Assembly (NCBI RefSeq): GCF_022045235.1
Contig: NW_027266265.1
Span: 29,202,001 to 29,266,000 of the forward strand
Direction: 5' to 3'
Length of the DNA: 64,000 nt
Source of the DNA: Haliotis cracherodii
Lineage: Eukaryota
The notes under the pieces were generated by a model. It saw only the letters and a list, made by a program, of their open reading frames with translations, was not told the DNA's origin and ran no database searches. The translations under genes were made by a program, and so were the position numbers. Below, piece by piece: positions 1 through 63,856 of this stretch (positions are counted from its first letter, which is position 1; the number at the start of each line of letters is the position of its first letter).

Positions 1-2146
1 CTTGCGTTGTGGAGGCGCCATCATCGACGACAGGCACATCATCAGTGCAGCTCACTGCCTCATGTTAGTATAGCTTCTTTGGCTTTTATTTTCTCGAATG
101 AGTGGGTGAATGAGTGATTAAATATGCTTTCAGGGGAGAAGTATGACGTCGGTGGATACCTTAACTGGACGTCACAACTGTGTCCATTTGAGTAATCGAC
201 CCAACAACGCCTTAACCACCAGGCTACATTTGTATGCCAAATATGTAAAGAATGTTATTTTCAGTTACATTTGGACCAACAAATACCATTTAGACTATGA
301 GATAGTCTGATATGACAGCTTGATATTTAAACAGACTGTAACACGCTTGGTGAATGATGTGATTCAACGCCACGTATAAAAGTATCTTATTTATATACAT
401 GTAACAGATGTACAAACCATTTAGCAAATCGCTGATACTTGTTGGTATGATTTATGAAGAAATGTGAATGTGCTTCGCGCACAACTTCATATCACATTCA
501 AGTGTTGGTATCCAAGAATGGAATTATATATGATAGATATCAATTATATAGTGTACAGAGAAAACATATACATGTTTTATTTTCACATAGGGGAATAAGG
601 AATGCCAAAGATGTAATTGTGGGGCTCGGATCCTCAGACAGACGCCGAACGCGAAATGCAACAGTATCAGCCTTCAGCATGCATCCAGAGCATTGGTCAG
701 GTGTGTGAGAAATATTCTCCCATGTGCATGTATCAATATTTTATTCCACTTGTTGAGTTGACTAAAATGTTTACATTTCTGTAAACTGAATACCTCCCTG
801 TTACTGAATACCTCCCGTTTCAAGTCGAATAGGATAAAGTACATATGTAAAAGTATATCTTCTGAAAATAGACTTAGCCAATCACAATTCTTAGTGTTGT
901 AAAAGCCCTCTGAATGTCACCAGTGAGTTATCAACCATCAAGCATGGCTTCATTATAAAAAACAAATATCCATCTATACCTTTATGTTAGAATAAGAAGC
1001 CGTCTCTTTGAAAATCTTCATGTGAACAATCAATATCATGGTTTTTTTCAGATGTCAACGATATTGTAATTTTAAGACTAAAAGAACCAATCAAGTTTAG
1101 CAAATGCATACGTCCGATTTGCCTTCCACCTCAAGACCATCAGTACAAACCCATGCAGAAATGCATTGTTGCTGGGTGGGGACTTACATCAGGTGAGTGT
1201 CATACCAAGCGAGAATTTTCCGTTTATGTAAAGCAATATACTTCCAGATCCAACTTCAGACGTCTACAAGTATAAATTGCTTAGATACTTTAGAGCGTGT
1301 ACAAAGTTATTCAAAGTTCACGGAACACTCATTCCTTGTTAATAATTGTGAAAGATTTGTCAAGGATAAAGGTCTGTATAAAAATCCAAACGACAAACAT
1401 CAAGTCTTTGAATGGCATTTAGAACATACTGCCCACTTAGGAATTGACTACAGACAGCTTGTTTTCATTTACCGTTCATAAGACATACAATCATTTTCAC
1501 TTAAAGGATAAATAAAAAAAATATTTTGCACCCCAATCCCTTTTTGTTGTCAAACCTAAGGCATTAACTTTCTTTTGTAACAAAGGCACTTTCTTGAACA
1601 ATGTTTCAGTGATCATATTGCGGCGTGTCAGCTTGATGTGGGGAACTTTAAACACTCCAAACTATCAAGCTGTGAATGTTCCAATACGTGTGTTTATTGC
1701 CTTGTGTTGCCACCACGAGATGTGTTCTTCATGCTAAAAGTAACGGTTATAACATGTGGCATGATGTTGCAGAGACGAGGCTGTTCCAGCCGTTCCAGCT
1801 ACAGAAGGTCAAAGTACCGCTGGTGGAGTGGGAGACGTGCCAGACGGCGTACAACATGGTGGACACACAGCTCTGCGCCGGATACTTCGACAAAGGAGGA
1901 AAAGATTCGTGTAATGTACGTTGTTTATGTTGTCAGATGCAGAAATGCATGACATCTATATATATATCATCACACAGTCAGGAGAGGTTATTGTCAGAGT
2001 ACATGGCAGACAAAAGTAATAATAAAATGATAAACGGTAATTGCGATCACAGTGTTGTTTATTCTGTCTTATTTGTGCACAGCGGAAGGTTGATGTGTGG
2101 GTTTTGCTAATAAAATAGAATAAGCTTTTAAACGTACAAATTATAT

Positions 2147-2201
<55 letters not shown>

Positions 2202-2262
2202 GCTAATGTCTCTACCACTAGTACTACTGCTGCTGCTGCTGGTTCTACTACTGGTCCTATTG

Positions 2263-2304
<42 letters not shown>

Positions 2305-2547
2305 TTACTACCACATTGCAATTTTGTCAAACCGATCCGCTAAGAAATACTTCTTTTTTTTCTTTTTCAGACTGATTCCGGCGGTCCTCTGATTTGCGAC
2401 TACAACAACCAATGGACTCTTATTGGAGTTGTGTCTAGTGGTGTTGGTTGTGCTCGGCCCATGTTTCCTGGAAAATATACAAGAGTGTCCAAATATATCG
2501 CTTGGATTGACTATGTAACGTCAGTGAGGAAGCCTTATCACTACTAA
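1..2547 (+). CDS. G1: trypsin-like S1A serine protease, 5'-partial, triad intact
   Basis: Exons <1-63, 591-700, 1052-1192, 1773-1915, 2371-2547, all GT-AG and in frame. Motifs [17 protein letters not shown] (His57), NDIVIL (Asp102), PICLP, AGWG, GGKDSCN/TDSGGP (Asp189, Thr193, Ser195), [18 protein letters not shown]. Stop TAA 2545-2547. Confidence 0.93.
2143..2311. repeat. (CTA)n/(CTG)n microsatellite in last intron of G1
   Basis: Long runs of ctactacta; source of the poly-Ser minus-strand ORF. Confidence 0.95.
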
Positions 2548-2568
2548 CGGACACGGGATGAGCAACAG

Positions 2569-4417: not shown

Positions 4418-4660
4418 GTTTGTTTGTTTGTTAGTGTGTTGTTAAACGCCGCAATATTACAGCAATATGACGGCGGTCTGTAAATAATCGAGTCTGGACC
4501 AGACAATCCAGTGATTGACATCATGAGCATCGATCCACGCAATTGGAATACGAGGGTATGCATCAACCAAGTCAGCGAGTCTGACCACCCTATCTCGTTA
4601 GTCGCCTCTTACGACAAGCATAGTCGCCTTTTACCTATTCTAACCCGGATCTTCACGGGT
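4418..4660 (-). mobile_element. SINE-like family A copy (others: 12446-12705, 19208-19460, 30994-31212 minus; 25760-26016, 55965-56130, 57197-57440 plus; partials)
   Basis: About 250-nt repeat with core tcgagtctggaccagacaatccagtgatt..ttagtcgcctcttacgacaagc..cctattctaacccggatcttcacggg and an (AAAC)n tail. Confidence 0.85.
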
Positions 4661-5569: not shown

Positions 5570-8500
5570 ATGGGTTGGTGTGAGGGAATTCGCGTCCGGA
5601 GTCTCTGGTGGCGAATTTTTGTGTTTACTCTCTGCTTGTTGACATTTATGTGTGGGAGCCACGGTCAAACACGTAAGTTGGTGACGAATGTTGTGCAGGC
5701 AGGATTGACTATTTTTCTTAAGATTAATTGTGTCAGATAAATTTATACAATTATTTACCTTTGAATAGTAACACACTACCTTGTGACATGCATGTTACTG
5801 ATGTTTGAATTGATATGAAGACACAGTAATTGTATACTATTCAAAAGCAAAGGATCATCCGATTATTTCATATTACTATAGATGTATACATGGTATGATG
5901 ATTAAGTGTACATTATAACATTATTTACTGTAGTTATATGGAAATATCGGGTGGTCCTTAAATTCTTTGAGAAATATAATCGTATTACTTATTTGCATGG
6001 TTAAGTACTGGTAAACATAGGACAATAAATCAAAAGTGTGACTTCGTTGATAATAATACGGATAGTGAATACCGAAGAAACAGGTGTCAGCAATCTCACT
6101 TCACATAAGAAAAATATAGTATTTTTGGATTAGTCTTAAAACGGCTCAAGTAATTATACAAAGAGCTCAAAACAGTTCTTCTTTGGAACTGAATATGACA
6201 GTGTTCAGCCTGGTTATGTCATTCCAGATATCTTATAGTAGACATTCAGAGGAATTTACTAGAAAGGTCACACCGCTTGTCAACATGATGAGCAATGCTT
6301 TCTCATATTTTGTGACCTGTAATGGAGTTTTCACATCTCTTTATTTGCTGGAACCTTTTTGATTATGTGAGTGGCGGGTGTTACCGCTAAAGCAGAACAT
6401 GCATACCCTCTTCGCTAACACCTGGTGTCATCATTGTGTTTCACTATAATAAAATGTCGTAATATTTTTTTTCCTTTTGCGCCCAATATTCTAGATGCCT
6501 GTGTTCCTAATTCACGCTATACTAAACATTTTTATAAATAAATATATAAATTTTGTTTAAAGGGGGTTTAGGCTCGATAAATTTGCAATCCCATCAATTT
6601 TTCCTTTAACAACCCTTCAATGGTCTGCTTGTTCAAATTGTACAGTGATTTATTATTATTCATAATGTTTAGAGCTTTCCATAAATGAGCTGTGGCGCTA
6701 TGGGCACCTTGTATGATATATATTATTGATTTGTTGACACAAATACACTGACGTCTTTGCAATATTCGTTATATTGGGAAGTTCCATCCCTGATTGGTAT
6801 ATTTCATGACATAGGCAGATGTGGAGAGCACTGTCCGTACTTCCGCCAATGTTTCCCCACATCCCAGGTGTGCCAGCTACTCTACAGATACTGTCAATGT
6901 GGGCGCCCACCTTCCGGTAAAACAGCCTCATGCACGTTCACATTTACATAAACAATAGATCTATCACGTAAAATTGTACTGTTTATGTCATGTATGCTAG
7001 CTACATCTACCTGTTTATTGTGATTTCTGAGGCATGATATTGAGCTTTCAAGTTTATATGATCCATACGAAGTTAAAGACATGTATTTTACTTTACGTTT
7101 TGATAAAGAAAGAAATGCGACGTGACATCATGCAGAAGTATTGACTTCCTCTTCCTTTAATGACATTGTATTTTATAAGTCATTTGATCTATTACATAAG
7201 TACGACCTCCTCCAAGGACAACCACGACTACCGTTCCCTTTTTAACTGTGAAAGGTAACATGGCATTTATCATAATATAAAAGATACCTGTACAATTAAA
7301 TATTTTTGAAAATAAACCATAACACGTATGCATCTGGTACTCATAATTGTATGTAAAGGGGGATCAGCGTTAGCAAATGTTTATTTGTACTATGGGCATT
7401 ACATTTTTCAAGATAAAGTCAGCACACTGAAACCTCGTTTATCCGGACGGTCCTCTTCCCAGTAAAATGGTAAGGATTAAAACATTTCCGGATTAACGAA
7501 TCAGTGGTTCAGAGTAATATTCTTCGGATTTATGTTGTCGTTACAAACAGTAACGTTCTGATTTCGGGGTTTCCTGGTTCAGCGAGGTTTCGGGAAACTT
7601 TAATGTTGATGCATATAAAACAATTTTGTCGTACAGTTATTATTTCATATGTCCATTGTATGCACAAAAATACAACATCAAGCATTTGTGTGTGTGTCAG
7701 CACTAAAAACGTCTGATTACTTATTTATTTGGCCTGTCGCCATGAAAACTTTGTACGTACAGTATTTGTGTTTTTTCATATACTTAACTCAGATCTTTGT
7801 ATGACATACTTCCTTAACAAGGACATTCATTTCTAGACTGTGGTGTGAGCTCCATAACCGGCCCGGCCCAGATGTACGTGGCATCTAGCCGTATCGTGGG
7901 AGGGGATGCGTCTGCAGAGTGTCAGTTTCCATGGATGGCTGTAGTGGGAACCAGAAGCAGCCTGTGCGGTGGCAGCATCATCGACGACAGACACGTCCTC
8001 ACTGCTGCTCACTGTGTCGTGTACGTTGTGTGTATGGTTGGTCAGTGAGGTTTTACGCCACTTTAGCAATATTCCAGCAATATAACGGCGGAAGAGTTCT
8101 GACAATATACTCATTTGGGGATTTGAACCCAGGCCTTTTGACGTGACGAGTAAACGCTATAAGACAAGGTCTTATAATCAAGTAAGCTACAGATATGCAT
8201 ATTATTGCAACACGCAGTTGTGCTGTTCTAAGTTGAAGATAAACGTAATATTGAAATGTGTTTTAGAATTTACATTAACTTTATGTGTGTTCAAGTCCAA
8301 ACCTGTATGGAATGAGGGTCTAAATGTACGATGTGTCTAAGTGATAATGACCGCCTCTGTGGTCTAGTGGTAGAGCGTCCGCCAGGAGAGCGAAAGGTCC
8401 GGGATTCGAACACCGGCCACGTCATACCAAAAGACGTTAAAAGATGGTACATGTTGTTACCCTGACTGGCGCTCGGCATTAATGGGCTGAAACAAGGACT

Positions 8501-11016
8501 GGTCGGCTCGGATTCAATATACTGTGTCTCAGTAGGGTATTCATGTTAAACTGCGGCATGGTATCTCAGTGAGTTAGCACTATAAATCGGCATCAGTCCA
8601 GACTAGTACAAGCAGCCACACACACACGTACATTCACGTCGCTATATAAGTGCAATAATCTGGGACGCGACGTAAAACCCCATGTCACCAGTGATAATAA
8701 ACAAATGTTATAGTTTTGTGTTTACTCATCCCCAGCGGTTACCTCAAGAATTAATCCGCAGTGTTTACGCCACATCTGGAAAACTGTCTCGTGAAAATCG
8801 TATCAACGCCAAAAGATGTCGTTCATACTCCTCTGCACGTCAGTTTCGCGGTGGTGTGACCGATCTCTCGTTCTGAGAACGTCTTACTTCATGATAAAAT
8901 ATTATTTAAAACATCCTTCAACGGGTACATACATCAACGAATGTCATGTTTCTGTGTATTTTAGAAGACGAAATGTTGTGGTAAACCCAAGACTGTTGAC
9001 TATAGGAGTTGGGTCTTCCCGTCGGAACAGAGCAAGACGATTTCGTGTCTCTCAAGTCACGGTCCATCCACAGTACCGAAGCAGTAGTTTCTGTAAGTGA
9101 TGAGATTCAACTTCATCAACCGGCCAAATACGGAGCTTAGATAATGCTTCAAAAAGTAGTGTTCCAGCATTATCACGATGGGTTTGAAACCCAAGTCTTT
9201 TGTTTGACGAGCCACGGTGCATCCTCGTAATGAAGCAGTCGTTCCAGTAAATATAAGTGACACAACTCTTTCCATGATCATAAAAAATATATATTGTATA
9301 ATACTGACCAAACATAATCATGTGTCTGTGGTCCACTTGCAAAAAGTGATGGTGTACCTCATGGATGACACTCGTCACAAAAATATGCAAATGCAAGGGA
9401 AGTATTTACGATAAAACAAACGCCATACTAAGGAATTGAATTCTGTAACCCTGATCAAATTTAAACAACTTAACGCATTATACTCATGTGGGGAATAGAC
9501 GAATGAATATATATATATATATTTATATATATGACTGAGGGGGTTTGATTACTGCAGATTTGAACAGTGTATAAACAGCGTGTTTGGTTGACATTGACAG
9601 ACAGAAAACTATTTTCGAGACGAACCCAAGATCAGTGGTACCTGGCTTGGCTAGTGATGCAACAATGCATAGAAATGTACGTCGCCTTGGCCAACTGGTT
9701 GAAATTGGCACCCATATAGTCATTCCTGTGTATTTCAGCTAACGACGTTGCCGTCATCACGTTGAGAAGGAGGTTGCAATGGTCGCAGTGTGTTCGCCCC
9801 GTCTGTCTCCCCGACCAACTCGACACTGCTCTTGTTGGGCAAATATGTGTTGCTGCCGGATGGGGACTCACAAATGGTAATACTATATGTATAAATATGT
9901 CAATACATCAGTTATTGCTTATCTAACGTGTTTACGCTTTAAACAGTACTTCAAAACTAACTATGTATCACAATCAAACCGCGAACCATCCGGTATCCAA
10001 ATGCGAGTCGATCGCGATCCGAACGCGAATCGAACGCGAACCGTACCGATCCGATCGCAGCTACATGTACATGACGTTGTATAAGACACCCAAAATCTTT
10101 CGATCGCCATCGGATAACGATCGATGGAACGTTAGTTTTTAAGTGTCACTTTGTATGAGAATCGCTTTGATCTTCCTAATATCAAAATGTTTGATTTTAT
10201 CTCTATTAATTTCAGAGAAAAACTCACGGGCCGAGAATAATCTCCGGAGCGTCAAAGTGCCAATAGTGAGCAGTGGTACATGCAGAAGGATATATGGATC
10301 CCGAAACTTTGACACAAACAACATCTGTGCTGGTGACGTTAGAGCCGGAGGCATTGACTCTTGTCGGGTACTTAATATCTATTAATGTGAAATAATGAAT
10401 ACATGTATCAAATAGTGTATTTAAAAAAGCAAGTGGGTGAGTTTGATTTAACGTCGCTTTAACAGTATTTCCGTTTCACGGCGTGCCAGCTTGATGCTGG
10501 GGGGAAGCCCAACCCTTTGGTGAGGTCGAACCCATGTGTCAGTTGGTACCGAGAAATCTAGAATCTGGAATTCGAACCAACAATATAATAATTTTTCTGG
10601 CATAGTTCGGCACAGCAAATTGCGGCGCATCAGGCGACTGGGCAGCCTGTGCTACCACTGCAAAAGAAGGAAATGTGTGGGGAAGATGGCACACAATCTT
10701 TTAACTTTGTGATGAGTGTTTTATTCCCAGCTTAAAGGCCCATTATGCTCTATTTGGAGTATGAGGAAACTGTCTTCGTATGCTGAAAACAATGTACGAT
10801 AACGATGCGCGGATAATTGTTACATCCCATTTTACATTTTGATTTTGCTTCATTATCTAGGGAGACTCCGGAGGCCCTTTGATGTGTAGTTCCGGCACCC
10901 AGTGGAAAGTAATGGGCATCGTTTCTTTCGGAAGAGGGTGTGGACGGCGAAGGGCACCGGGGGTCTACGCCTTCGTTCCCCCCTACGTCTCATGGATAAA
11001 TAGCGTCAGGTCATGA
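5570..11016 (+). CDS. G2: secreted, strongly cationic trypsin-like serine protease zymogen with N-terminal six-Cys module and Thr/Pro linker (about 338 aa)
   Basis: Exons 5570-5672 (signal MGWCEGIRVRSLWWRIFVFTLCLLTFMCGSHG/QT), 6815-6916 (CGEHCPYFRQCFPTSQVCQLLYRYCQC), 7201-7254 (RPPPRTTTTT), 7837-8020 (DCG..SSR/IVGG..TAAHC), 8965-9092, 9739-9876 (NDVAV, GWG), 10216-10367 (GIDSCR), 10861-11016 (GDSGGP, VSFG, PGVY). Total 1017 nt, in frame. The three N-terminal exons are less certain than the protease exons. Confidence 0.9.
7423..7597. mobile_element. Degenerate MITE (pogo/Tigger-like termini)
   Basis: Left cactgaaacctcgtttatccggac and right ..cagcgaggtttc form an imperfect inverted repeat; related relics near 24060-24200 and 49915-50092. 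Confidence 0.4.
8350..8690 (+). mobile_element. tRNA-head SINE family B (Meta/MESC-like core); other copies 26182-26410, 34450-34805, 41668-41931, 43046-43326 (minus)
   Basis: A-box tggtctagtgg, B-box ggattcgaacacc, core gtcataccaaaagacgttaaaagatggtac..gctcggcattaa, (CA)n, 3' tail cgtaaaacccc. Core assignment is from memory of MetaSINE/MESC domains. Confidence 0.75.
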
Positions 11017-13346: not shown

Positions 13347-13385
13347 GGAGCTTAGGTACACAATTAACCTATGCCCAAGATCAGC

Positions 13386-16300
13386 ATGGTTTCACTTAAG
13401 CTGTTAACGTTAGGACTAGTGCTTATTTCTGAGGCGGTCTCCCAATTTTTCATTCCCAGTTTCGGTAGGTTGCAATTGTTTATTTTTCTTATAAACGTGA
13501 TATTTGTGATTATTGTTCCAGCGTCTTGGAAGCCTTTGGCCAAACATTCAAAGTGTCAAAGCAATTATTGTCGTAAGGAGTTGACAAAATTTTGAATCAG
13601 AATGAAATACAATGATTTAATAGATTCAACCATACATTGTGCGTTATTCAAGCTTAATTTGGTGATACGGGAGACGCAAGATATCTTGCGTTGGATCGAG
13701 TCCTGATCAGGTTAGGGAATTGGGTATACTTCAGTTGGGAACATCTCGGGGCGCCAGCATAACTCTTTTGCATTAACACTTTGGGTAAACCTACGGGCAC
13801 GAATTCAGACAAACCAAGAATCATATTCAGACGAATATGAGATTCGAACCTTCGAATATAGGATCCACTTAACATTGGTTACATTATGACCAGGGTAGTG
13901 TAGACCCCCTTTTGCAAAATCCTGGATCCGACTCTGTTTCTGTTCGACTTTTTATCATCCACGTATTAATGCTCACAGGTGCGGTAACCTGCGGATGGCA
14001 GTATGGCGGACAGTGCAAGAGAATCTGTGATAGTGAAGAGTACATCTTAGGCCGGCAGCCATGTGGTTTCGGTGTCGCGGTCTGCTGTTCGCCTACTCTA
14101 CGTAAGGTCTTTTTCTTGTGCAGTTTCATTTTTAAACCATCGGTCCTTGCGAGGGTTTCTGGATGAGAACATATTCCGCTTTTTTGAGTTATATATAAGA
14201 AATGATTGCGGTGATATAAACATTGGATTCACGAGGACAATATTAAAACTCGAGTATTGTATGTCACTAGTCATATCAGTCAATATCTACCAATCTATGA
14301 CTACAGTGAGGACCCATTTGATCTCCCGAGAGTGAATTGTGTCCCAGAAACAAACAGATATGGAAGACAACTTTTAGACGTTTGTAAACATATGGAAATT
14401 CATATTGTAAATGGAAGAATGAAGGGGGACAAACCATATAATTTTACCTACGTTTCTCATCAAGGAGCCAGCGTAATCGATTATTTTATTGTTTCTAGTA
14501 ACATTTTCCATTGTATGTTCCTTCGAAAATTTATTTTGTGACACCACTACATTCATAACTGAAGAAATAAGATTTCAACCTGTCCCTAAAATCAGACAAT
14601 TACATGAGAACAAGGAACGACTTGAACAACTGATGGCTCAAGATAGCTTCAGCAAAATTGTGGATGACTTTACAACTGCTTTGGAAACCGATATTAATCT
14701 AGCTGTTACCAAATTAAAGGACATGGTCCTGTTTTGTGCATCAAGTATGGGAAAGATATCAACAGGTAAATCTAGACCTAGAGAGCAACCTCCATGGTTC
14801 GACACACAGTGTGAAGATCTTAAGGTACAGAAAAGCCGGAAATTAACAAAGTTTAGAAAGTTCTCATGCAGTGAAAATAGGCTGGAATATATTGAGGCAA
14901 AGGACAAGTTCAAGAAATGTTGTAAAGAGAAGAAAATCGCTCATGAGAAGAAAATAGCTTCTGATATTTCTGAAGCCGCTGTAGGTAAAGACTGTAAAAC
15001 ATTTTGGACAGCATTGAAACATGCTCTCGGCAAACATTCTTCGAACTCAAACATTTCTCCAGACAAATGGTTGTCTTATTTCAAAAACTTATTAAATCCG
15101 GAATTAAGTGTAACATGTGAATTTGGGACTATAGTTACACACTTCATTGAAAATCACACTTTTGAAAACTGCGAACACTTCCCATTTATTGACCAGTTGT
15201 TGTCAAGTGTTATCTAATATCTCTCTAAACCAAAAGGAAGATTTTATACTGCCTTCATAGACTTTAAAAAGGCCTTTGACTATGTCGACAGAAAAAAACC
15301 CTACTATATGCCCTACTCCAGAAAGGCTGTCATGGTAAAATGTATGTTATTCTTAAAAGTATGTTTAGCTCTGTGAAAGCATGTGTTAAAGTAGATTCTG
15401 GTAAAACAGATTTGTTCGAAACAACGGTGGGTGTTAGACAGGGCTGTATGTTGAGTCCGATATTATTCATTTTCTTTATAAATGATCTTGTGACAGAAAT
15501 GTACAAAAATTGTCAAAATGGTATATTTATTTCTCAAGATATTGAGGATTTGATGCTGTTGCTTTTGTTGTACTATTTGCTTATAATGTTGTAAGTCTTC
15601 AGAGGCAATTAGATATTTTAGAATTTTTTTGTTTTAAGTGGGGTTTCCAGATAAACTTTAAAAAATCAGAAATTGTAGTTTTTAGAAATGGGGGTATTTT
15701 AAATCGCTTTGAAAAATGGTACTATAACGGTCGTTTATTAAAAACAGTTTCATATTATAAATACCTGGGAGTAGACTGATTTGGACGAAATCATGTGAGA
15801 ACCTGGCAGCTCAGGCTGTTCAGGCATGCATCCCTGTTTATAGATTATTCCAAAAAAATTCATTCCTATCATTCTCCACAGCTTGTAAAATATTTGATTG
15901 TAAAATAAGTCCTATACTTTTATATGGTGCAAAAATCTGGGGGCTAAGGTATTTTGCATGTAAAGAGAAAGTTCAAACTTCATATTTTAAATATTTTCTT
16001 GGTGTAGGTAAATATGCCTCAAACACAGCTATCTTAGGGGAAACTGGCCGCCACTATATGTTTGTCCAGAGTCAGATCAGAGCTATAAAATATTGGCTAA
16101 AATTATTGCACATGGGATCAAATAGATATCCTGTACAATGTTATTACTTCCTTAAAAAGCTAGATGAGAAAGGTAAGCACAGTTGGGTGACAGATCTTAA
16201 AAATTGTTTATATGTTAATGGTTTTTCATATGTCTGGGACTACCAAAATGTTGGTGATGTAAATATTTTTTGGTATCAATTTCAGGAAAGACTAAAAGAT

Positions 16301-19300
16301 GTTGCATTTCAAAATTGGTTTGCAAAATTGTCTGCTTCCAAATATTTATATCCTTATTCAAATGTTAAATCTTTGCTGAATGTAGAAAAATATATTGATT
16401 CTTTGCAGGATAAATCTCTCAGAAGAACCTTCAGTAAATTTAGGATTAGCTTACATAATTTTAATGTTCAGTTACTACGTAAAAAACCCTCAGATAATGA
16501 AAATAGTGTATGTAGATATTGTAACAAGGGTTGTATTGAAAATGAAGACCATGTCTTTTTCACTTGTGATTATTACCAGACTTTACGGAAAAATTATATT
16601 ATCCAACTACGGGATATGTATGACGGTTACCTGTCACTTCCAAATATTCTTAACTGCAATAATGTCGATGTAATAAAACTGACTTCTGTATACCTGTATA
16701 AGATATTTAAATCTAGAAAAACGTGACTAAATTTATATTGTACTGACATTGTAATATAGGCCATGTAGCCCACATTACCGAATAAATCTGTCTGTCTGTC
16801 TGTCAAAGATTCGTTTTATGCCACTATCTGATTCGTAATTAGGTGATTCTGGTAAATTAGACTCCGGGGGACAAAAGAATGTATACCGAAAGTAAGTATA
16901 GTCATTTATGTAATTGAAAATAGAAAGACCTGTTGTTAAATTTGATTATGTCTATTTAATCATCACTTATAACTGCAACAGTTTGTTAAACGTTACCTGT
17001 GGCTGGGTAAGTTTGTGCTTACTGGGAAGACTGGTTTGCAACCAAAAGACCTCTACCACGATTCAAATGTTATAAATTTGTGCTGGAAAAAGAATTTATT
17101 GATTTTCCAAAAGATGCCTAAGATCCCCATCAAAACTTGTGTCTTATTTTTAATTTTTTAATTTTTAAAAGTTTAAATCAAATTATATTTTAAAAAAATA
17201 CAACCATGTAGAAGAATTGTTTGAGTGCTGACCAGGCACCAGTACAGTTATTTTTATGATACAATATCGCTTACTTATTAATCAGATATTTTCAATAGAC
17301 ATATGATAAAATCAACTGAGAGGTATAGTTTCTTTTGTTGCCTTCTATGGCCAGAGTCTCAACATTTTTATACCACCATGCTTTTCACTCTAACTACATG
17401 TATCGTGAGGGAATATATACGGTTTCACGTCGTTAATCTAATACTACCACGTCACAATAGGGCTGAAATATTGCCGATGTGACGTTAAACTTTAACACAC
17501 TCACTCAATACTACCAACACGGGGGACAGCAGGAATGAGCTTCAAACACTGTACCCATGTAGAAATCGAATCCAATTCCCAGAAAACAACTTTGTGAAGT
17601 GTCGTTTTCTTTGTTATATTATATGTATGTGGTTTACAAAAACATGACAAAGATATTTCTTCTTGTAGCGTGCTTATCATATGGCGGAGTGTGTCGCCAA
17701 CGCGGGTGTTTCAGCACCTTTGAGGTGCCCCTTCAGTTCAACGTTAGATGCCCATTCGGAGAAAGAGGAACATGTTGTGTGAGACGGTCGAAAAGACCCG
17801 TAACGCAGACAACAACGATGACAACTACGACGACACTCGTGCCACCTGGTACGTTGTTAGTTACTAATAATCCACAACACGTCCTCTACGAGGGCTAGTC
17901 CAAAGGTTCTGAGCCTAACAAATAACACCAAAACTTGTAAAAGTCAACACAATCTCCCTGCTTTTCAATACACTTCTCATATCGATAGTGAAGCTTTCAA
18001 ATTCCAGTCAGAAGTTTTCTGAAGCCACCCTGAAATACCCATTCACGGCAGTTTTGCGGTCATCGTTGTCGTCATAGCGCTTTCCACGAAGATGTTCTTT
18101 CAGTTTAGGAAACAGGTGGAGCCAGGTCTGGCGAGTATGGAGGGTGAAAAAGCTCTTCTAACTAACAATGTCGCACAGCAGCCTATGCAAGTCGATAGGT
18201 GTGAGAAGAGCCATTGTCATGAAGGGGTAGAACTCCAGCACTCATCATTCCTTGTCGTTTTTCTTTGATAGAATCTCTCAGGCGATGAAGCAAATCAGCA
18301 TAGTAGGCACCGATAACTGTCTTTTGACTTTCTAAGTAATCAACAAGGATAACTTACTTCACTGATCTTGAAGACTTGGATGTCTTTGATGCCGGAGAAG
18401 TGGAATGGTGCCGTTCCGTGGATTGATGTTTTGACTCGGGATCATAGTGGTAGACCCCATGTTCATCACCCGCTACTAATCTCTTTTTAAATTTGATGAA
18501 ATCCTCTTAAATTATCTCTACATTTTCGGTGGCAATGTCAGTTGTTGACAGTTCCTTTTTCTTGAAGATCAAAATTAAGAACATTTGGCACCCAACGAGC
18601 ATATATCTTCATCTGTAAATGTTCATGATATAATAGTTTCAATGGATCCATGGCTTAGACCTGTGTCTCCCTCAAGTTCAGCAATGGCAAAAGGTCTATC
18701 TGACAGTATAAGTTTTTCTATCTCCTTGATTGAATCTTCATTAATGGAAGTTGAGGGAACATTGGAATAGCTAGGGCACTTATCCCCATACACTTGTGAC
18801 ATGCGGTCATGAATTTCTTGGGGAGTACTTTTCTCCAAAGTAAAAAAAACTTGGTACTCGTTCGTTTCCATTTCCGTGTCCATTTGCCCTGTCACGTTCA
18901 ACTGGCTGTCACTAATATACAAACGACCTCAGCAGACCAAATACTCTTGCAATGAACTACTCAAACAATGTACTACATTGACTATTCGCCCATAATTGTG
19001 GGCTTTGGTATGGCCCATAGTTGAAAGTTAGCCAGGCTTAGAACGTTTTGACCAGCCCTCGTTCTCCCTTGTTCATATTTACAAGGTGTCAACAATATCA
19101 ACATAATCAATTCATCGAAACATGAAGCTCTGTTTAAAAGAAAGAAATCGTATGTCATTTTTAATTATTATCAAATTTCCTTAAACCTAAGAAGGATAGG
19201 GTGATGCTGTTTGTTGTTTTACGCCGCACTTAGCAAAATTCCAGTTGTATGACGGCGGTCTGTAGACGTCCGGACCAGACAATCCAGTGATTGACATCAT

Positions 19301-26035: not shown

Positions 26036-26181
26036 NNNNNNNNNNNNNNNNNNNNNNNNNNNNNNNNNNNNNNNNNNNNNNNNNNNNNNNNNNNNNNNNN
26101 NNNNNNNNNNNNNNNNNNNNNNNNNNNNNNNNNNNNNNNNNNNNNNNNNNNNNNNNNNNNNNNNNNNNNNNNNNNNNNNNN
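26036..26181. other. Assembly gap (146 N)
   Basis: Run of n between two SINE copies. Confidence 1.
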
Positions 26182-52474: not shown

Positions 52475-52515
52475 TTGATGTTCAATGTTCTACTTCAGAC
52501 TGATTTCGCATATCC

Positions 52516-54065: not shown

Positions 54066-57000
54066 ATGTTGCCCAGGACTGTGTTTCAAGTTTTACTCTT
54101 GGCCTATATAGCCTCTATTACTAATGGACAGTTTAACTGTAAGTATTGTTTTATGTCATCCATACGAATATATATGAATAATTAGCAGTGAAGGACATAA
54201 AGTCGGTAGTATCGCTATCAGTTTGGTTTGAATTATATTCTTTCACTGCAATGAAGTGCAGTGCGTTAGCACTGTTTGTTGTAAATCCAGACCGCAGGTG
54301 TTAAATTGGGTTTGAATTCATTATTTCCAGTTAAACCTGAAGTCAGCTAGCCAGTATTTACACACAATCATGAAGTAGGGCAATGGGAGTACACAAGTCA
54401 TTAGCAGCTTGCCCCGATTACCATAATATATTCTGAGCTTACTGTTGACGTGACATTTACTTTCACGGCAAAGCAGATTTCCAGGTGTATTTTGACTCCT
54501 GCCTGTGTAATTGATATATTTGCATATTGCAATTAAACGACTAACACAAACGTTGGAAACGTTTCACTGAAGTATGCAATTAATTATGTAAATATGAATA
54601 CATTGAATTATATTATTTTAACTACAGAAGGGACTCGTTGATTAGGATCATGATGAATGATATATGTCTTCGTCATTAAGCGGTCCGTCGACCTCTGACA
54701 ATCCTCTCCAGTGCAAGGTATAGCTTTGAGACAGGAATGGAAATATACATTCAAACATATCAGTTACATTAATCTATTACACTATCGTTCCATTATGCTT
54801 GTGGAGTCTTAAATGCATGTGGGGGATTGTGGTTTATGTGCTGTTTTGACAGCTGAGAAGTTCACCCGAACTTACATGTATTTCTGGGTATGTGATGTTG
54901 ACTTATCCAGCTAGTTTGTATAAAGCTTAAGCTGACAAATACGAGGTTTAATAGCGATGTGGAAAGACGTCCACGCCTATTTCTTTGTATCATGCCACGT
55001 TGGGACGCCATCATACTTTCATAATTTGCCGCGGGCACGGGTTGCCCGGTAGTCTAAGGCGCCGCGATTCGCTGTGCAGAGTTGCGTCCCTTGGGAACAC
55101 CACAAACCTATGATTGTGGGTTCGAATCCCGGTTCGCCCCGATTATGATTCTATGTTTGTCAGCACCATACCCGTGCTCGTGGGTTTCACTGAAGTGGTA
55201 AACATCTGAGACCTGCATCACTTCGGGCTTTCCTCCCACATTAAGCTGACACGCCGTGATATAACTGGAATACTCTTAAAAGCGGCGTTAAACCCAACTC
55301 ACTCACTCACTCACTCATAATTTGCCGACTAATTGCTATAACTTCTTCATGGCATATACACGACAGTTCAGGGCCACGTCTTACCCATCTCAACAGGTGA
55401 ATGAATGGCAGGATAGTTAAATAACACACGCACGCATGCACGCACGCACGCACGCACGCACGCACACGCGCACGCATGAATATATGTTGGACATGACAGT
55501 TTCTGCCAGCTGATTGGTATATACAAAAGGTTGGTGACACATGTAGAGTAAATTATGGTAAAAATGGTATCTTTTGTTTCAGTTTGTCGCTTGCTACAAG
55601 GTCAATGTCAGACCATATGTCCATCGGGTTCTACCACTCTGTTCCAAGCCCCAATTCTGTGTCCCTCAAGGAACTACTGCTGTATTCAAGATAGATCACA
55701 ACGAACGACAACGACAACAACGACAACGCGAATCCCTGCCACTCGAACCCCCTATCCGGTAATCACAGGTAGCCCCATTCTTCCGTGTTTGTGGAATCAG
55801 GTCAACGTGCTCATAGTTTAAACATAATCGGAAATAGAAATGTCATATAGAAATGATCAAACGCATACATTTACTTCACGATTAGATCACCCAAATCTGA
55901 TTTCACCTACAAATTTGACTGAATAGTCCCGATAGTTAATAAATTTCGTCCAAAACTTTACCCTGAATATCTTCAGCAACCTATTGCTTGCCGTAAGAAG
56001 CGACTAACGGGATCGGATTGTCAGCCTAGCTGACTTGGTTGATGCATCCCAATTGCTTTGATCGATACTCATGATTGTATGGCCCAGTTTGAATATGACT
56101 GAGTGTTGCGTTAAACAACAAACAAACAAACCTTGACGATCTGGTTCTTGTAGATCTTGAAGAATTATAACACACAACACTTGATTAGCACGGGTTTTAG
56201 TTGTGAGGTACATGCACATGTGGTTAACTGATAGGTATCCAATGTGATGTCACACTAAACTAACACTTACTACTACTAAGTGCATTGTATAATGTATTCC
56301 TATTTGGACAGAATGCGGGATAGGACTACAGTCCCGTATAGACGTTTCTTCACGGATTATCGGCGGTTCCAATGCTGGCCGTTGTGAATTTCCATGGATG
56401 GTGTACATATATAGAGAAAACAGTCCATGCGGAGGCAGCATCATCGACAGCAGACATATAGTGACAGCTGGTCACTGCCTGAGGTGAGATGCTGTTTGTT
56501 GAGATAAGATGCTTAAAGGGGGACTTTTCTCCTCGACCCGGTTCCTGTTTCAAGACTAAGCCTAGTCATTGTAATTAATACCTTGTTCTCCAAATAATTC
56601 TAGGAACCGGAAAATCGCAACAAGACAAATATTTGTATTGTTCATTAGTAATCACTACTTAACCATCCCCGCTCATCGTGTGTATTATATAGCCAGTGTA
56701 TTGTGTTAAGTACTCCTCGCCCCATATTACAAGCGGTAATGGTACAAGGAATGGAATATTATGTTCAGAAAATACTTATGTTTTATTGTCTTGAATAAAT
56801 CTTGCTAAGAACGAATGCACACTGACAAATACAAAATTCCCCGTTATACTCGTGATGTGCATTATATCTCCATTTATTTGGGAGAATATTTCCATTTACT
56901 TTAATCAAACCTAGATGATTAAAATAGGCTGATTCAAGTTAGCTCTATGAAATCAACTGTTGAAAAAAAGTTTTATGTAAAAAAAGAATGTGTATGTTTA

Positions 57001-59414
57001 CTCTTGTGGAAAGGGAAAATAACGTAACCTGAAAGAAATGGTCGGATTGTTCGGTTTAGATATGATACAACTTCTCGAAATATCTTACACGTGTATTGAA
57101 TCCGGATCTAGATTTGATTGGCTGTCCTTATACATTTATTTGCTGAATGTCAGTGAAGACAGGATAGGTTTGTTCCTTTCCACCACTTACAAAGAAGACC
57201 CGTGAAGATCCGGGTTAGAATTGGTCTTCAACAACCCATGCTTGTCGTAAAAGGCGATTAACAGGATGGTATGGTCAGACTCGCTGACTTGGTTGATGCA
57301 TGTCAGCATATCCAAATTTCGTGAATCGATGCTAATGATATCAATCAAAGGATTGTCTGGTCCAGACTCGATTATTTACAGACCGCCGTCATATTGCTAG
57401 AATATTGTTGAGTACGGCGTTAAACAAGAAACAAAGAAACGCAAAAGCCTCCCCTGTTTTGTATTCTCGGGTAAAATATGACATTTCATATGGCTGTTGT
57501 TTGTTCTTAAAAAGCAAAGAGTTATCTCTTTGTAAAACATCTGTACAGTGCTCCTTCGTTAATTAGATAATTACCATTCAGATATACAGTTTGCCATCAC
57601 CAATACTATCGCCACTTTACAATTAAATCTGTTTACCCTTTCAGTAACGTAGCAAAGTCGCAGCTGACGATAACTATTGGTGAATACAACACGAATGAGT
57701 ACAGGCCCAAGGCGGAGTTTGTCGTCCGCAATTACAGAATATTCATCCCGTCGACATACCAATCCCAGTACTACAGTAAGGGTCATATATAAGTGAGTGC
57801 GTGAATGTTGTCTAACACTGCAAACAGCAATGTTACAGCTATATTACAGCGACATGTAAATAATCGAAGCTGCACCAGGCATGTAAATGCCTGAAAGCAA
57901 TGGTTCACATCGTCAGGGCAAGACGATGCTCAATCAACCAAGTCAGCGACCCTGACCACCGGATCCTCTTTGGCCAGTGCCTATGGCCAACATGACACAG
58001 ATGGTCTCCTTGGAATATATTGCATATTTATACACATGGAAAACGTTCCCGACCACACCTTCTTTTTCATATATCTCGAACTTCTATGTATCATTTTGAA
58101 ATATCTACATTGATATCATTTTGATAAAAGTCAAAGACACCACCGATACTTCTTGGGCAGTCGGTAAAAGAAAATCGTATGTTCCTCCAGATGATCGCTT
58201 GTATGGTCATATGTATGGCACAAAGCAGAAGATGCAATTGAAAGGGTCCATAAACTTATTATTATTGCTAAAGACCCGTTGCAAATCAATTTATTACATA
58301 ATCGAATTCTGTTTCTGTATTTCACTATGTGTATGTAACTTTGTAGCAAACAGTAAATATGTTTTGTAAAATATTAAAACAGGATACGATTAAATAAGTG
58401 CCTGTTATGTAAGGAAATATATAGTAAGCGCTGCATTACTTTTCCCAGGTGTATATATAAATGACATTTTCATAAGTTATCATAGGTTATCATAGGCAAC
58501 TAATATATACGTTACCTAAAGCCATTAGTCATTTATAAAAAAAAACACCATTCGTTATGTGGTGACATAGGAAGCTGTTTGAAAGTATGGACATAAAGGT
58601 GCATTGCAAGGCAACTTCAGATACATGTATGCAGTAAACGTCCCAGTACCGAGCGTCAAACCAAACTTCTTGGGTTTCTATGTACTAGTACGTGTAAGTA
58701 CTCAAATTACGCTTTTTAAAATCTCATTTAGAAGTGCAATGGATGTATTATCCAAACCAGTCTATTGCAATGATGATGTTTTTTTCTAGGGGATGACATT
58801 GCAATGATTAAACTAGATGAACCAATCGACTTTTCACGGTATGAGTGCCTCACACCAATCTGTATCCCCGAGTCCTGGAGAAGGTTTTCCGGAGTGTCTT
58901 GCACTGTGATCGGATGGGGCGTGACACGTACAAACTATACATGTGAGTGTTATGTATATTACTTTAACATTAATGTTTCTAGATTTCAAGGTGTTATGCA
59001 GTATTTGATACCATGAAATGTATTTGAAACCCAAAGTGTTTATCGACATCATATGAGGGGTGGCTGAGAAGTTCAGAACCTGAATGTGATGGAATGAGTT
59101 GATGGAGTTGGATGCTAATTATTTTGTCAATATAATCCCCTCCGAGTTCCACACGCTTCTGCCAACGATGCTTCAGTGCCTGGACCCCACATCTTTGTCC
59201 TGATGGTTGAAAAATGTCCACCAAAGCAGATGGTAGGATGAGATGGTAATGTGGCTGTTAACCTTCTAGCGCCTTACAGGCAGCTTGGGTTGTATACTCC
59301 CCATGGAGATGAGAATGAAATCCGAGTGCTCACTGATCAATTGACCGGGGTAATAATAGTGTATCGCTATGAGCATCCACTTGGTGAATGGATTCTGGCG
59401 CATTTTCAATGCAC

Positions 59415-59481
<67 letters not shown>

Positions 59482-62400
59482 CATTTTTATTATTATCATT
59501 ATTATTATATTGGCAATTAATAGTCTTTTGGGATGTGGTCCACAAGTATGATGTCTTTTAAATTCCCGAGAACCAAAGCCATTATTTTGCCACCTGATAG
59601 AACAAACTTTTTCTTCTTCTTTGGAGTAGACGTTAGATGTTTCCACTGCTTTGACTTTTGTTTAGTCTTTGGGTGACAGTGGTAAACCCAAGCCTCACCC
59701 GTGGTTACAAATCCCACGACAAGATTAGCTGGATATGCTTCAAAACGACGTAAATTCCCATGAGAGATTCCCATTGTCATGCCCAGTTCGTTTCTATAAT
59801 AATTTATCTTGAACTTGCGTTTTAGCGTACACTGGGATAGGTCAAGAACATCAATAACATCCTCGTTACGACCCACCCCAGTGAACAAAACAAAGAAATG
59901 CACATCCAAACTGTGGCCTGGATCCGTTTCTAAAAATAAATTTACCTCAGTATCTATCTGGCACATCTTTATGATAACTTCAATGATAGGCCAAATGGTC
60001 AATGATGACTAATACTTGTAATCGTAACGGGATATTCATAGGGTTTGGTCCTCACTCTATGAGTTTAATACTCCAATGAACTCACACAAAGTCCAAACTT
60101 AAAAAGATATTGGCATAAACTGAATCCGCACTGTTTTATTATCATGAATAGTTATTTACTGAATTATTAATTCTTGGCAATTATCAAGAGTATAAATGTG
60201 GCAGATAAAAGATTTGTGAATCTCCTCAAATATCCTCTAGAGTGTGAGTGAGCAATAAGAGGTTTTAGTCGTTAAAGAATGGCACCATTGACATAAACAA
60301 CATCTGTGGATTAAGGTTCTTCCAAAAGGCTGGGGCATCCTAATGCCACGTCTTTTATTTGACTTGACTCATCCAAGATATACATGCAACAGAAACAAGC
60401 AGATTCACACTGTCTCGAAATTTGCGGGTTTGACATTTACTTATCTTTAGTCCATTGAATTTGTACATGTTGGGTTAAAGGCAGATGTTGTGTGTCTACC
60501 TGTGGTTGAGCAGGTGCACTGGTCTGCTGTCTTGCCAGGTGTGGACAGGTGCAAGCTATAATGGCATCTTCAAACCGATAAATACTTCGGTATTCAATGA
60601 GCCTACGTCAATATTCTGTTAATTCGTTTTAGTGAACATTCTTGCATATGCATCATTTGTTATTGGCAATTATTCACTTACAGACTGTGAGTTCAACCCT
60701 AACCCCGTGACGAACCAATTATATATGTGCACTCATTATACAGAGGACAGAATACCTTACTCTATTCTATTTGGCTGGCCTAAAAAGTATTAACGTTTCG
60801 TATAGAAACCTGGAATGCATTGGAAATTAAAATTGTCTCCAAGCTTCCCTTGATCTCCCGAAAAATAAAAAATTAGAATAATTATGCATTAGGCCGTTTA
60901 AACAAGACAAGAAATTGCCTGCCACAAAAATTACATTGTTGCAAGGTGTTTTCTTTTAAAACCACTCAGGCTCATAGTATAAGGTATAAAACATATATTT
61001 GTATCTGTAACTGAAACTTATATATTCTTGATACAAAAGCATGTTCTTTTTTCAATCTATCGATCGAAGTAAATATATTTGATTTAATGATTCCATTAAT
61101 CATATTGATGCAACGATATTTCAAGTATATAACCTAGCGTTATAGCAAACATTATCAAAAGAAACACATTGTCATATCGATATCACGGTACCTCGACGAT
61201 GTGTGTTTTATGATTATGTCTGATAAGTATGGCCATATGTATACTCCAAATGTCAGTTGAAATTGTTTATTGCGCCAAAGACCATAGGCCTATAGGACAT
61301 AAAATCAAACATTATATATGTATTGATATTCAAATCAGAAAATACATATACATGTGTAGTGACGGGTATAACTTTAAAGCATGAAATACTTAATTTAGGT
61401 ACATGTACAGTTTTATTCTCCAGCTAATAATGTAGGGGGATATAGTTATCATCTGGTCTGTCTGCCCATCCGTCAGTCCGTCCGGTATTTCGTTTCTGGA
61501 GCATAACTTGAAAACCGGACTACATCTCTAAAACTAATACTAGGTATTCTTTCTTCAAACTGTGCACACACAAAGACCAGTTTGTCAAATGGTGCCTTTT
61601 GCTATTTAGGGATTTTAAGAATTTATATTTCTTTAGCGTCCATTGCAACACATTTGGTCTTCACTCTGTTCATACATGTAATAGAGTGTTTGTCTGGACC
61701 ATATCTCTAAAACTGATAAGTATTCATTCATGAAACTGTGCACACGCAAAGACAAGGTTGTCTACTTGTGCCTTTTGATATTTAGATTTTTAAAATTAAT
61801 ATTTTTTTCGGTTGCCATAGCAACAAGTTTGACTTTGACTCTGTTCACATCGGTGTCTACCTGACATAGAAATATAAAATTCCGAATCCAAAGTCCATGG
61901 TATTGTTTTGACAGCTTAATAACTACTCTTGTATGCGGACAGACAGCTTAGATAGAAACCAAGTTGGAACAAAGGCAACAGTCAGAGGATTTGTTCTAAT
62001 GTATTTGGGGTGGGTGAGTGGGGAAGGGGTGATTTACAAGCCATTCCAAGCATGTATTATCATAAAATATATCGTTTCCTTAAATCGACAAAAGTCATAC
62101 ACACAAGCAAGAAATGAAACTAATTTTCAACACAACCATAACCAAACTCCAATGGTCACGAGCTACGGATAAATCGATATGTTTTGAAGGTCCAGAAGGT
62201 AAAAGAAAGCACGTTTCATTGTACATGTAATCATTTTTTTTAAAATGATAGTGTACATGTACGTATATATCAGAGATAATTGTGAATATTGGATACAAAT
62301 GGGACACATTGCATATAAACTGGTTTGATTATGATTATCTTTATAGATCTGAATCCTCCCCTGTCAGCGATACTACAGAAGGTAGACGTGGACATCGTGG

Positions 62401-63856
62401 ACAACTCCATCTGTACACAGAAGTTTGGGACGAGCTATTTCAGGAGTACTAACTATTGTGCCGGTATTCTTGCAGGAGGACGCGACTCGTGTGGTGTATG
62501 TAACCTTTACCGTTAATACTATATTATAAATCCATGTAATATTTATATTCACATTGAACGAGTAGTACATTTTCTTTCACAGGGAAATAGTTTCGAGTCG
62601 TTTAAGGCACTGCAAATCGCTGTGCTGAGTTGTGTCCCTCAGGAATGCCAGAAACCTATCACCGTGGGTTCGAATCCCTGATCCCTGATCATGTTTTAAG
62701 GTTTGTCATGACCTTGCTCGTGGGTTTGGTAAACGCCTAGGACCTGCATTGATTCGGGCTTTCTTCCCACGTCACGCTCACAAGCCGTAAAATAACTGAA
62801 ATACTGTTCAAATCGGCGTTAAACCCAACTCACTCACTCACCCACTCGAGAAGACTACAGACAGCTGATGATATTATGTTTAGGACATATGGATGGACAA
62901 ATGGTGAAACTTGAGGGAACACCGTGTTCCCTCAACTTATGGCTGCAACGTATACCCCATCAACATAATGATAAAAGCGACAAAACGCTTTCCACAATGA
63001 TATGAAATCTCCACCAAAAGTCTGTTGTATGATTCCGACTGTTCAATGAGCTTATGTTTATGAATCACTATCAAATAGTAACGATAACAGTTGTTCGTTG
63101 AAAGGTGAGAGATAAGAAAGAGTGCTTTTGGCGAATTGATTTAGCTACTGATGAGTATATTATACTAATAATACATTTGGGATAACACAGACCATCAACA
63201 GTAATTGATAAATGTTATAATGTTATGTTATTGTTTACTGATGATATGAAAATTAATAAATGTATCATAGACTGATATCATCCTATGCTTAGGATATTGA
63301 TGCCCCATTGGATTTCGGCGCCACAACACCGATTATACTGATGATATGCAAATTAATAAATGTATCATAAACTGATATCATCCTATGCTTGGGATATTGA
63401 TGGCCCAGTGGATTTTGGCGCCACAAAACCGATTATACAGAGTGACGTCCCTTAGGTACCCTTATCCCTCGGGGCCTGATACTGATCCGGGTTTTTTTTG
63501 TCAACACCTTACCGGCTCTCTTTGTCTTGTAAAGTGTTGAATGTCTATATCCTCTGTCACCATAATCAGCTGACATACCTTGATGGAATGATGACAGTGA
63601 AATGTTCTTAGCAGCATCAAATCCAACTCACCCACTCGTTTAACTTTGAACAAAGTATCACCTTAATTATTCATTTCAGGGCGATTCAGGAGGACCCCTT
63701 ATGTGTTCAACAATGGACAGATTCGGCAGACGGAGGTTTACACTTGCAGGTCTTGTCTCAACGGGATCCAACTGTGCTGAGAAAGATACCCCGGCTATAT
63801 ACACCGATGTAGCGCAATTCCGCAACTGGATTGATTCTATTCTTGCAACTCCATAG
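54066..63856 (+). CDS. G6: secreted trypsin-like serine protease zymogen with one beta-defensin-like domain and Thr-rich linker (about 346 aa), triad intact
   Basis: Exons 54066-54138 signal (MLPRTVFQVLLLAYIASITNG/QFN), 55583-55768 (CRLLQGQCQTICPSGSTTLFQAPILCPSRNYCC + T8), 56312-56483 (SSR/IIGG..TAGHC), 57645-57775, 58790-58942 (DDIAM), 62347-62495 (GRDSCG), 63680-63856 (GDSGGP). 1041 nt in frame. Confidence 0.93.
55033..55317 (+). mobile_element. SINE family C, best-preserved copy (others 10433-10650, 48905-49140, 62595-62845)
   Basis: ggtagtctaaggcgccg (tRNA-Leu-like D arm), gtgggttcgaatccc B-box, tail agcggcgttaaacccaactc(actc)n. Confidence 0.85.
59053..59790 (-). mobile_element. Second mariner transposase relic, in a G6 intron
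   Basis: Minus-strand peptides VTTGEAWVYHCHPKTKQKSKQWK..SGGKIMALV..IILVDH and KHRWQKRVELGGDYIDK. Terminal tgaggggtggctgagaagttcagaacct resembles the TIR of the 17889 element. Far boundary approximate. Confidence 0.85.
59417..59510. repeat. (TTA)n microsatellite inside the mariner relic
   Basis: Direct trinucleotide run; source of poly-Y/I/N ORFs. Confidence 0.97.
61410..62060 (+). mobile_element. Non-autonomous Helentron/pearl(CvA)-like element
   Basis: ttttattctcc..gggggatatag start, then a (GTCT/GTCC) microsatellite and two tandem about 180-bp core repeats (aaactgtgcacac..gtgccttttg..actctgttca). Boundaries approximate. Confidence 0.6.
63236..63439. repeat. About 100-bp tandem duplication (2 copies)
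   Basis: tactgatgatatg..ttaataaatgtatcat..actgatatcatcctatgctt..gcgccacaa..ccgattata occurs twice. Confidence 0.9.

Follow-up and report, generated by a model that had tools for sequence, protein, structure and literature searches.

Whether a tandem cluster of trypsin genes that mixes active-type enzymes with catalytically dead homologues amounts to a functional unit is the question raised by a 64,000-nucleotide stretch of the Haliotis cracherodii genome (NW_027266265.1, 29,202,001-29,266,000; hereinafter the window, with positions counted from its first letter). This window contains six trypsin genes, denoted G1 to G6 in their order along the sequence, and a first-pass annotation interpreted them as a possible closed extracellular cascade: the six genes would supply the enzymes, substrates and cofactors, with the SSR/I sites in G2, G4 and G6 being cut by G1, G2 and G6, and with the pseudoproteases serving as cofactors once cleaved. 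The analysis described here indicates that G1-G6 are real, intact, tandemly duplicated S1A genes that are part of an array of the Haliotis lineage. The products probably represent a lineage-specific Haliotis family of secreted two-chain proteases matured by cleavage, together with conserved pseudoproteases, with a tethered Cys-rich module; the setting is probably extracellular defence, and the activators need not be encoded locally. A closed cascade among G1-G6 is not indicated.

Motif scans combined with an all-against-all comparison of the plus-strand reading-frame fragments resolved the trypsin exons into six paralogous sets, each lying on the plus strand, and the Trypsin domain was confirmed exon by exon with Pfam. 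With the splice sites set by phase and by alignment with the paralogues, GT/AG boundaries are canonical throughout, the intron phases are 1, (1), 1, 2, 1, 1, 0, and all six models give complete open reading frames. The five full-length proteins score 95-191 bits against the Trypsin family (PF00089; cut-off 20.6), which assigns them to Peptidase S1A. Five of the six models, all except G2, are matched by RefSeq proteins or close orthologues: G4 and G5 are 100% identical to RefSeq XP_071091981.1 (P0151) and to P0163, respectively, G3 equals XP_071091980.1 (P0152) from the second Met on, G6 shows 98.8% identity and the same splicing as the H. rufescens protein P0159, and the identity of G1 to P0160 of H. 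rubra is 87.6%. The six genes are organized as follows.

1..2547 (5' end left of the window), plus strand: G1, active-type S1A protease; in-window exons 2-63, 591-700, 1052-1192, 1773-1915, 2371-2547; by catalytic scan, His57 at 53-55, Asp102 at 1060-1062, Asp189 at 1904-1906, Ser195 at 2377-2379; in the flanking sequence outside the window, plus strand, exon A starts at -136 and the exon of a module with 6/7 Cys spans -521..-429.
5570..11016, plus strand: G2, active-type S1A protease; exons 5570-5672 (signal), 6815-6916 (6-Cys module, not defensin-like), 7837-8020, 8965-9092, 9739-9876, 10216-10367, 10861-11016.
13371..24486, plus strand: G3, pseudoprotease; exons 13371-13464 (signal), 13979-14101 (defensin-like module 1), 17669-17848 (defensin-like module 2 and Thr linker), 20118-20310, 21373-21503, 21929-22072, 23657-23796, 24337-24486.
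28563..35180, plus strand: G4, pseudoprotease; exons 28563-28641, 29213-29335 (defensin-like module 1), 30649-30840 (defensin-like module 2 and linker), 31998-32178, 32483-32619, 33283-33414, 34097-34242, 35031-35180.
37393..43916, plus strand: G5, pseudoprotease; exons 37393-37468, 37904-38023 (defensin-like module 1), 39584-39856 (defensin-like module 2 and long Thr/Ser/Pro linker), 40728-40896, 41407-41531, 42252-42392, 42658-42812, 43764-43916.
54066..63856, plus strand: G6, active-type S1A protease; exons 54066-54138, 55583-55768 (one defensin-like module and Thr8 linker), 56312-56483, 57645-57775, 58790-58942, 62347-62495, 63680-63856.

The residues in positions 57/102/195 agree with the order active-active-dead-dead-dead-active given in the first-pass annotation, being H/D/S in G1, G2 and G6, S/D/N in G3 and G4, and G/D/G in G5. 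In G3, His57 is replaced by Ser (20297-20299) and Ser195 by Asn (24343-24345), with Asn in position 189 and Arg in position 193; G4 has the same two replacements (32165-32167 and 35037-35039, respectively) and retains Asp189; in G5, both residues are replaced by Gly (40883-40885 and 43770-43772), and position 189 is Thr. With Ser195 replaced in intact genes that are conserved between species, G3-G5 classify as serine protease homologues. Judged by their residues, G1, G2 and G6 are active-type, with the catalytic triad and the Asp189 pocket retained, and Asp189 and Gly216 are present in all three, as had been claimed for the active members. In position 193 (the oxyanion hole), G2 and G6 have Gly, and G1, like its H. 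rubra orthologue, has Thr; in position 226, aligned to factor XII, G1 and G2 have Gly and G6 has Ala. In trypsin, the G226A substitution lowers the activity and alters the Arg/Lys preference. The nearest relatives of G6 with solved structures are factor XII, enteropeptidase, kallikrein and PPAE-I, all cleavage-activated regulatory proteases. Asp194, Cys122 and one linker Cys were found in each of the six genes, so that the combination of an upstream linker Cys and Cys122, originally noted for G2-G6, extends to G1; in line with the proposed tethering of the prodomain after cleavage, the proteins look like secreted zymogens that would remain two-chain through a predicted disulfide between these two residues.

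The cluster does not end at the borders of the window. When 100 kb on either side was scanned with tblastn and motif searches, the array proved to comprise at least 16 S1 genes. It occupies about 230 kb (about -78.8 kb to +152.6 kb) and includes U1-U5 on the upstream side and D1-D4 on the downstream side of G1-G6. Upstream, there are four further active-type genes, with the junctions LPR, MPR, GLR and MPR preceding I/VVGG, and downstream, at least four further pseudoproteases that have TTASC or TSAVC at position 57 and GDEGG or FDWGG at position 195. In a maximum-likelihood tree of exons A, C and E from which the activation-peptide columns had been removed, all seven dead genes fall in one clade (90/90 support), and a single change suffices to account for the dead or active state, a result that none of 500 label shuffles equalled. 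Active G6 is physically located among the dead genes. G3, G4 and G5 thus belong to a clade of at least seven pseudoproteases in which His57 and Ser195 were lost once and which then multiplied. The six-gene set is an artefact of window placement because the array comprises at least 16 genes, with seven dead members, and the idea of a self-contained cascade loses its ground here, given that its membership was defined by the window edges.

Two peculiarities were observed in the array outside the window. An odd upstream S1 gene (L010, about -8.8 to -6.1 kb) keeps TAAHC, is devoid of the IVGG N-terminus and has GNSGAP with Asn194; it forms a long branch in the tree. Exon A of D2 is found twice, in identical form, about 2.9 kb apart (L015 and L016; +107.2 to +110.4 kb), which stems either from a local duplication of very recent date or from a repeat in the assembly.

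Several lines of evidence indicate that the pseudoproteases are maintained. G3-G5 have intact orthologues in both H. rufescens and H. asinina, which retain all, or almost all, of the Cys residues; between H. cracherodii and H. asinina, the Cys residues are conserved in 24 of 24 positions in G3, 23 of 23 in G4 and 26 of 27 in G5. The identity of the S1 exons of the dead genes between the latter two species is 64-94%, in most cases no lower than in the signal peptides and linkers. The possibility that the dead genes are decaying relics was considered and rejected, given the intact frames and the conservation of Cys in three species. By these signs of constraint, G3-G5 appear to be working proteins.

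What is conserved in these proteins includes the site at which a zymogen would be cut. The activation junctions are the following.

Just left of the window, plus strand: G1 junction PRISTY/IVGG, with Tyr in P1; the same in H. rubra.
7884-7904, plus strand: G2 junction VASSR/IVGG; codons TCT AGC CGT, then ATC GTG GGA GGG.
20150-20170, plus strand: G3 junction PVAGR/IVGG; TGR/ILGG in H. asinina, AGR/IVGG in H. rufescens.
32021-32041, plus strand: G4 junction IFSSR/ILGG; codons AGT TCA CGG; RPR/ILGG in H. rufescens, RSR/ILGG in H. asinina.
40739-40759, plus strand: G5 junction region GKRR/YIGS, dibasic, with no I-x-G-G after it; GRRR/YVGS in H. asinina.
56347-56367, plus strand: G6 junction DVSSR/IIGG; codons TCT TCA CGG.

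The four junctions quoted in the first-pass annotation (G2, G3, G4 and G6) were reproduced exactly, and these are the genes in which the canonical zymogen site, that is, Arg or Lys in P1, I/V-x-G-G and Asp194, is found; it is missing from G1 and G5. Arg in P1 followed by Ile or Val is shared by G2, G3, G4, G6, D1, D3 and D4 as well as the H. asinina and H. rufescens orthologues. Among the dead genes, six of the seven keep P1 Arg before Ile/Val16, and none of the exons E recovered from dead genes lacks Asp194. The zymogen switch thus seems to be kept in the dead genes, and cleavage-driven maturation of non-catalytic homologues is plausible because most dead members retain P1 Arg, Ile/Val16 and Asp194 across species. 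The same Arg, Ile16 and Asp194 would also be expected under the closed cascade and count in its favour. In G1, compared with the upstream paralogues (ASRY-AMPR/IVGG), the four residues that held the Arg are deleted.

The matching SSR sites of the proposed cascade are not supported as a conserved feature. The motif is indeed present in three divergent paralogues, G2, G4 and G6, with differing Ser codons; gene conversion was examined as the origin of the match and rejected, because the Ser codon families differ between the paralogues, and a match that does not stem from recent gene conversion is a point for the cascade. However, the motif does not persist across species: in a comparison of G4 with the proteins P0154 and P0008, P3-P2 is SS in H. 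cracherodii, RP in H. rufescens and RS in H. asinina. With an identity of 97%, the proteins of H. cracherodii and H. rufescens show only 10 differences, and P3 and P2 are two of these. The activation site of G4 could, accordingly, be evolving fast, and across the junctions compared, only the P1 Arg, not P3-P2, appears to be conserved. This variation, along with AGR in G3 and LPR, MPR and GLR in the upstream active genes, speaks against a dedicated set of SSR substrates.

Upstream of the protease domain, all six products appear to be built for secretion: a signal peptide is followed by one or two small modules rich in disulfides, in many cases by a linker rich in Thr and Pro, and by the linker Cys that precedes the S1 domain. 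The defensin-like modules, two each in G3, G4 and G5 and one in G6, consist of about 40 residues, with six Cys invariant in all seven and a spacing of about C-x6-C-x3/4-C-x13/15-C-x6/7-CC; each is encoded by a symmetric phase 1-1 exon and is followed by a Thr/Pro-rich linker. The modules of G3-G6 are predicted to be beta-defensin-like. The Pfam beta-defensin matches are sub-threshold (E about 0.1, under the family cut-offs). The model of the second module of G4 has a predicted local distance difference test score (pLDDT) of 81 and a predicted short helix and three strands, and the structures that match it, both in Foldseek and in a Foldseek-independent search of 48,161 PDB representatives, are almost all beta-defensins. 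The best matches are HBD4 (Z 3.7, the maximum), HBD2 (Z 3.5) and the oyster big defensin 6qbk (Z 3.1), and about 20 of the 25 matches at Z of at least 2 are defensins or defensin-like peptides. No clip chain is found in either structural match list for this module, and no Pfam CLIP or CLIP_1 domain (PF12032, PF18322) was detected at E up to 10 in the seven module exons and five full-length proteins. The full-length model of G4, with pLDDT below 50 for prodomain residues 15-141, was left aside for the prodomain.

Searches of the genome with the G6 module alone and with a seven-module profile retrieved no module with a significant E value beyond the seven of this window; two weaker modules were detected downstream, at +146.6 kb and +157.0 kb, with a local hidden Markov model. 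In the slot of the defensin-like module, G1 and G2 carry a different Cys-rich module with 6/7 Cys (-521..-429 in G1; 6815-6916 in G2, where the pattern is C-x3-C-x5-C-x6-C-x6-C-x-C) that has no Pfam match. The Thr/Ser/Pro-rich linkers between module and protease (17790-17848 in G3; 39700-39856 in G5; 55700-55768 in G6, TTTTTTTT) vary more between species than any other part of the proteins and resemble O-glycosylated stalks of the mucin type. In G3, the CC of the second module is immediately followed by a furin-type motif, RRSKR (17776-17800; RRWKR in H. asinina and RRSNR in H. rufescens), where cleavage could set free a double-defensin fragment. The second copies of the defensin-like module are cationic.

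The window includes one assembly gap.

26036-26181, no strand: run of Ns between the stop of G3 (24486) and the start of G4 (28563).

There is no exon or frame crossing the gap and no exon within about 1.5 kb of it; both flanks are copies of interspersed repeats that are each found in at least 8 other places in the window, and the RefSeq accessions of G3 and G4 are consecutive in two species. A paralogue could, in principle, still have been lost in this gap. An interspersed repeat of about 250 bp, with copies 75-88% identical, is present at 4426-4992, 12464-12707, 19208-19459, 25750-26018, 31022-31212 and 57196-57441, that is, in introns and spacers of the array, with one copy adjoining the gap. 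Transposon debris occurs in introns at 14257-16726 (plus strand) and 59517-60002 (minus strand): in intron 2 of G3, it consists of reverse-transcriptase fragments (RVT_1, E 2e-6; zf-RVT), and in G6, of a fragment of a mariner-type transposase in the intron that follows the Asp102 exon.

The scenario that we consider the most probable is the following. Most members of the family would be made as single chains and then cut after the conserved Arg by an Arg-specific protease, possibly one encoded outside the cluster; the new Ile/Val16 N-terminus would pair with Asp194, maturing the S1 domain, and the Cys-rich module would stay attached through the disulfide between the linker Cys and Cys122. In the dead members, the product of this maturation would be a binding protein instead of an enzyme. 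By analogy with other systems, extracellular defence is the most likely setting.

Several observations weigh against this scenario. G1 (P1 Tyr), G5 (RR/YIGS) and D2 (no visible site) fit no single simple activation rule. The G2 model matches no database protein in two profile searches, and its basis is the splice sites and the paralogue alignment. The module fold comes from a seven-sequence alignment, with structural Z of 2-3.7, low as expected for 40 residues, and in its language-model features, the G4 prodomain bears a weak resemblance to the clip clusters of arthropods (0.77-0.79, under the trusted level). Finally, the defence setting is drawn from analogy, and secretion, O-glycosylation, disulfide tethering and cleavage are all deduced from sequence.

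The closest analogy is with the clip-domain serine proteases (clip-SP) and serine protease homologues (clip-SPH) of arthropods that function in prophenoloxidase activation, the Toll/Spaetzle pathway and horseshoe-crab clotting. The abalone proteins resemble these in being apparently secreted, in the small N-terminal 6-Cys module ending in CC, in the linker Cys that would be tethered to Cys122 (both residues being found in G1-G6, with the disulfide itself predicted), in activation after Arg before I-[VIL]-G-G, in the non-catalytic homologues that retain the cleavage site and in the tandem arrangement of the genes; PPAE-I is among the solved relatives of G6. The differences are substantial as well: the abalone modules have no Pfam CLIP match and a predicted beta-defensin fold, and the dead genes have lost His57 besides Ser195. 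In a genome search run without a eukaryotic positive control, although by a method that finds trypsin exons of 45-60 residues, there was no match to Pfam CLIP (PF12032), Spaetzle or the arthropod hemocyanin/prophenoloxidase family (Hemocyanin_M), and therefore arthropod-style downstream targets are not in evidence. Thus, the abalone array resembles the clip-SP/SPH systems in its logic but, by the tests run, is not a member of the clip family, and the analogy with a clip-type cascade drawn in the first-pass annotation is not borne out at the level of components.

Three other comparisons are relevant. Beta-defensins and the molluscan big defensins (Crassostrea gigas big defensin 1, 6qbk) share with the abalone modules the Cys spacing and the predicted short helix and three strands; unlike these peptides, the abalone module is a tethered prodomain, single or doubled, of an S1 protein of about 380 residues, the Pfam scores are under the family cut-offs, and the hydrophobic N-terminal domain of big defensins was not seen. 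Azurocidin (CAP37) has the S1 fold with the catalytic His and Ser replaced, and in the masquerade-type homologues, a dead S1 domain is preceded by several disulfide-knotted modules at the N-terminus, with proteolytic processing required before these proteins act. In contrast to the abalone pseudoproteases, azurocidin has no Cys-rich prodomain and the masquerade modules are of the clip type, and with both, the sequence-level kinship seen is limited to the S1 fold. In HGF and MSP, a dead S1 domain needs a cut after Arg and insertion of the new N-terminus for its binding function; G3 and G4 are similar in that both keep R/I-[VL]-G-G and Asp194. However, HGF and MSP have kringle prodomains, are of vertebrate origin and are established receptor ligands.

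A bolder version of the analogy is that abalone independently rebuilt the clip-SP/SPH logic from other parts: S1 proteases and a seven-member clade of pseudoproteases with tethered beta-defensin-like modules would be matured by an Arg-specific cut into microbe-directed cofactors or effectors of molluscan humoral defence, with the fast-changing P3-P2 tuning who activates whom. We regard this extension as rather unlikely.

Among the alternatives to cleavage-matured two-chain proteins, the one that fares best, if still doubtful, is that no cascade is involved and that G3-G5 are stand-alone products processed by general secretory convertases, either opsonin-, adhesion- or antimicrobial-type pseudoproteases with defensin-like modules or carriers that release a double-defensin peptide. 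The combined loss of His57 and Ser195 follows the azurocidin pattern, and the cationic second modules, the furin-type site in G3 (RRSKR, with RRWKR in H. asinina) and the dibasic [KR]RR/Y of G5 are all compatible with such precursors, as is the predicted resemblance of the modules to beta-defensins and big defensins. Big defensins are described as mainly molluscan antimicrobial peptides (PMC6805989). Conversely, the predicted tether between the linker Cys and Cys122 suggests that the modules remain attached after the R/I cut, and the retention of Ile16 and Asp194 is more suggestive of a zymogen matured by a regulated protease than of the plain processing of a precursor.

A role outside immunity, such as digestion, fertilisation or gamete interaction, larval settlement or shell-matrix processing, with the array being an ordinary lineage-specific expansion of secreted proteases, is improbable in our estimate. 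The generic RefSeq names (chymotrypsin-like elastase 2A, CTRL-1, stubble-like, tryptase-2-like), most of them of the digestive type, point in this direction, as does the considerable divergence of the orthologues (76-80% identity between H. cracherodii and H. asinina), and serine proteases figure in mollusc shell-proteome and metamorphosis studies. Digestive S1 enzymes, however, rarely have tethered Cys-rich prodomains or conserved pseudoprotease partners, and the solved structures closest to G6 are regulatory, not digestive.

The closed cascade itself is comparably improbable: Asp189 in G1, G2 and G6 does suit P1 Arg, and insect clip-SPHs are reported to require cleavage and to serve as cofactors (PMC6901238, PMC10540698), but the supposed drivers of SSR/I cleavage do not fit the part, given that G1 has Thr193 and itself needs a cut after Tyr, a site conserved in H. 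rubra that no Asp189 member should cleave, and that G6 has Ala226. In addition, G5 lacks a canonical site altogether. Compatibility within the cluster is weak evidence because P1 Arg with Asp189 is the commonest S1 pairing, with 291 trypsin-like candidate hits in the genome search, and any Arg-specific protease would fit P1 Arg.

In the literature searched, we found no paper on these genes or this architecture, and we know of no humoral protease cascade that has been elucidated in a mollusc. Bacterial disease causes heavy losses among abalone, the endangered black abalone included. The present yield consists of gene models and a map of the array rather than a demonstrated cascade. If the scenario of a lineage-specific family matured by cleavage is correct, its domain design would be convergent with that of the arthropod clip proteases, and the conserved, cleavage-matured pseudoproteases with their defensin-like modules would be concrete candidates for components of a molluscan humoral cascade.

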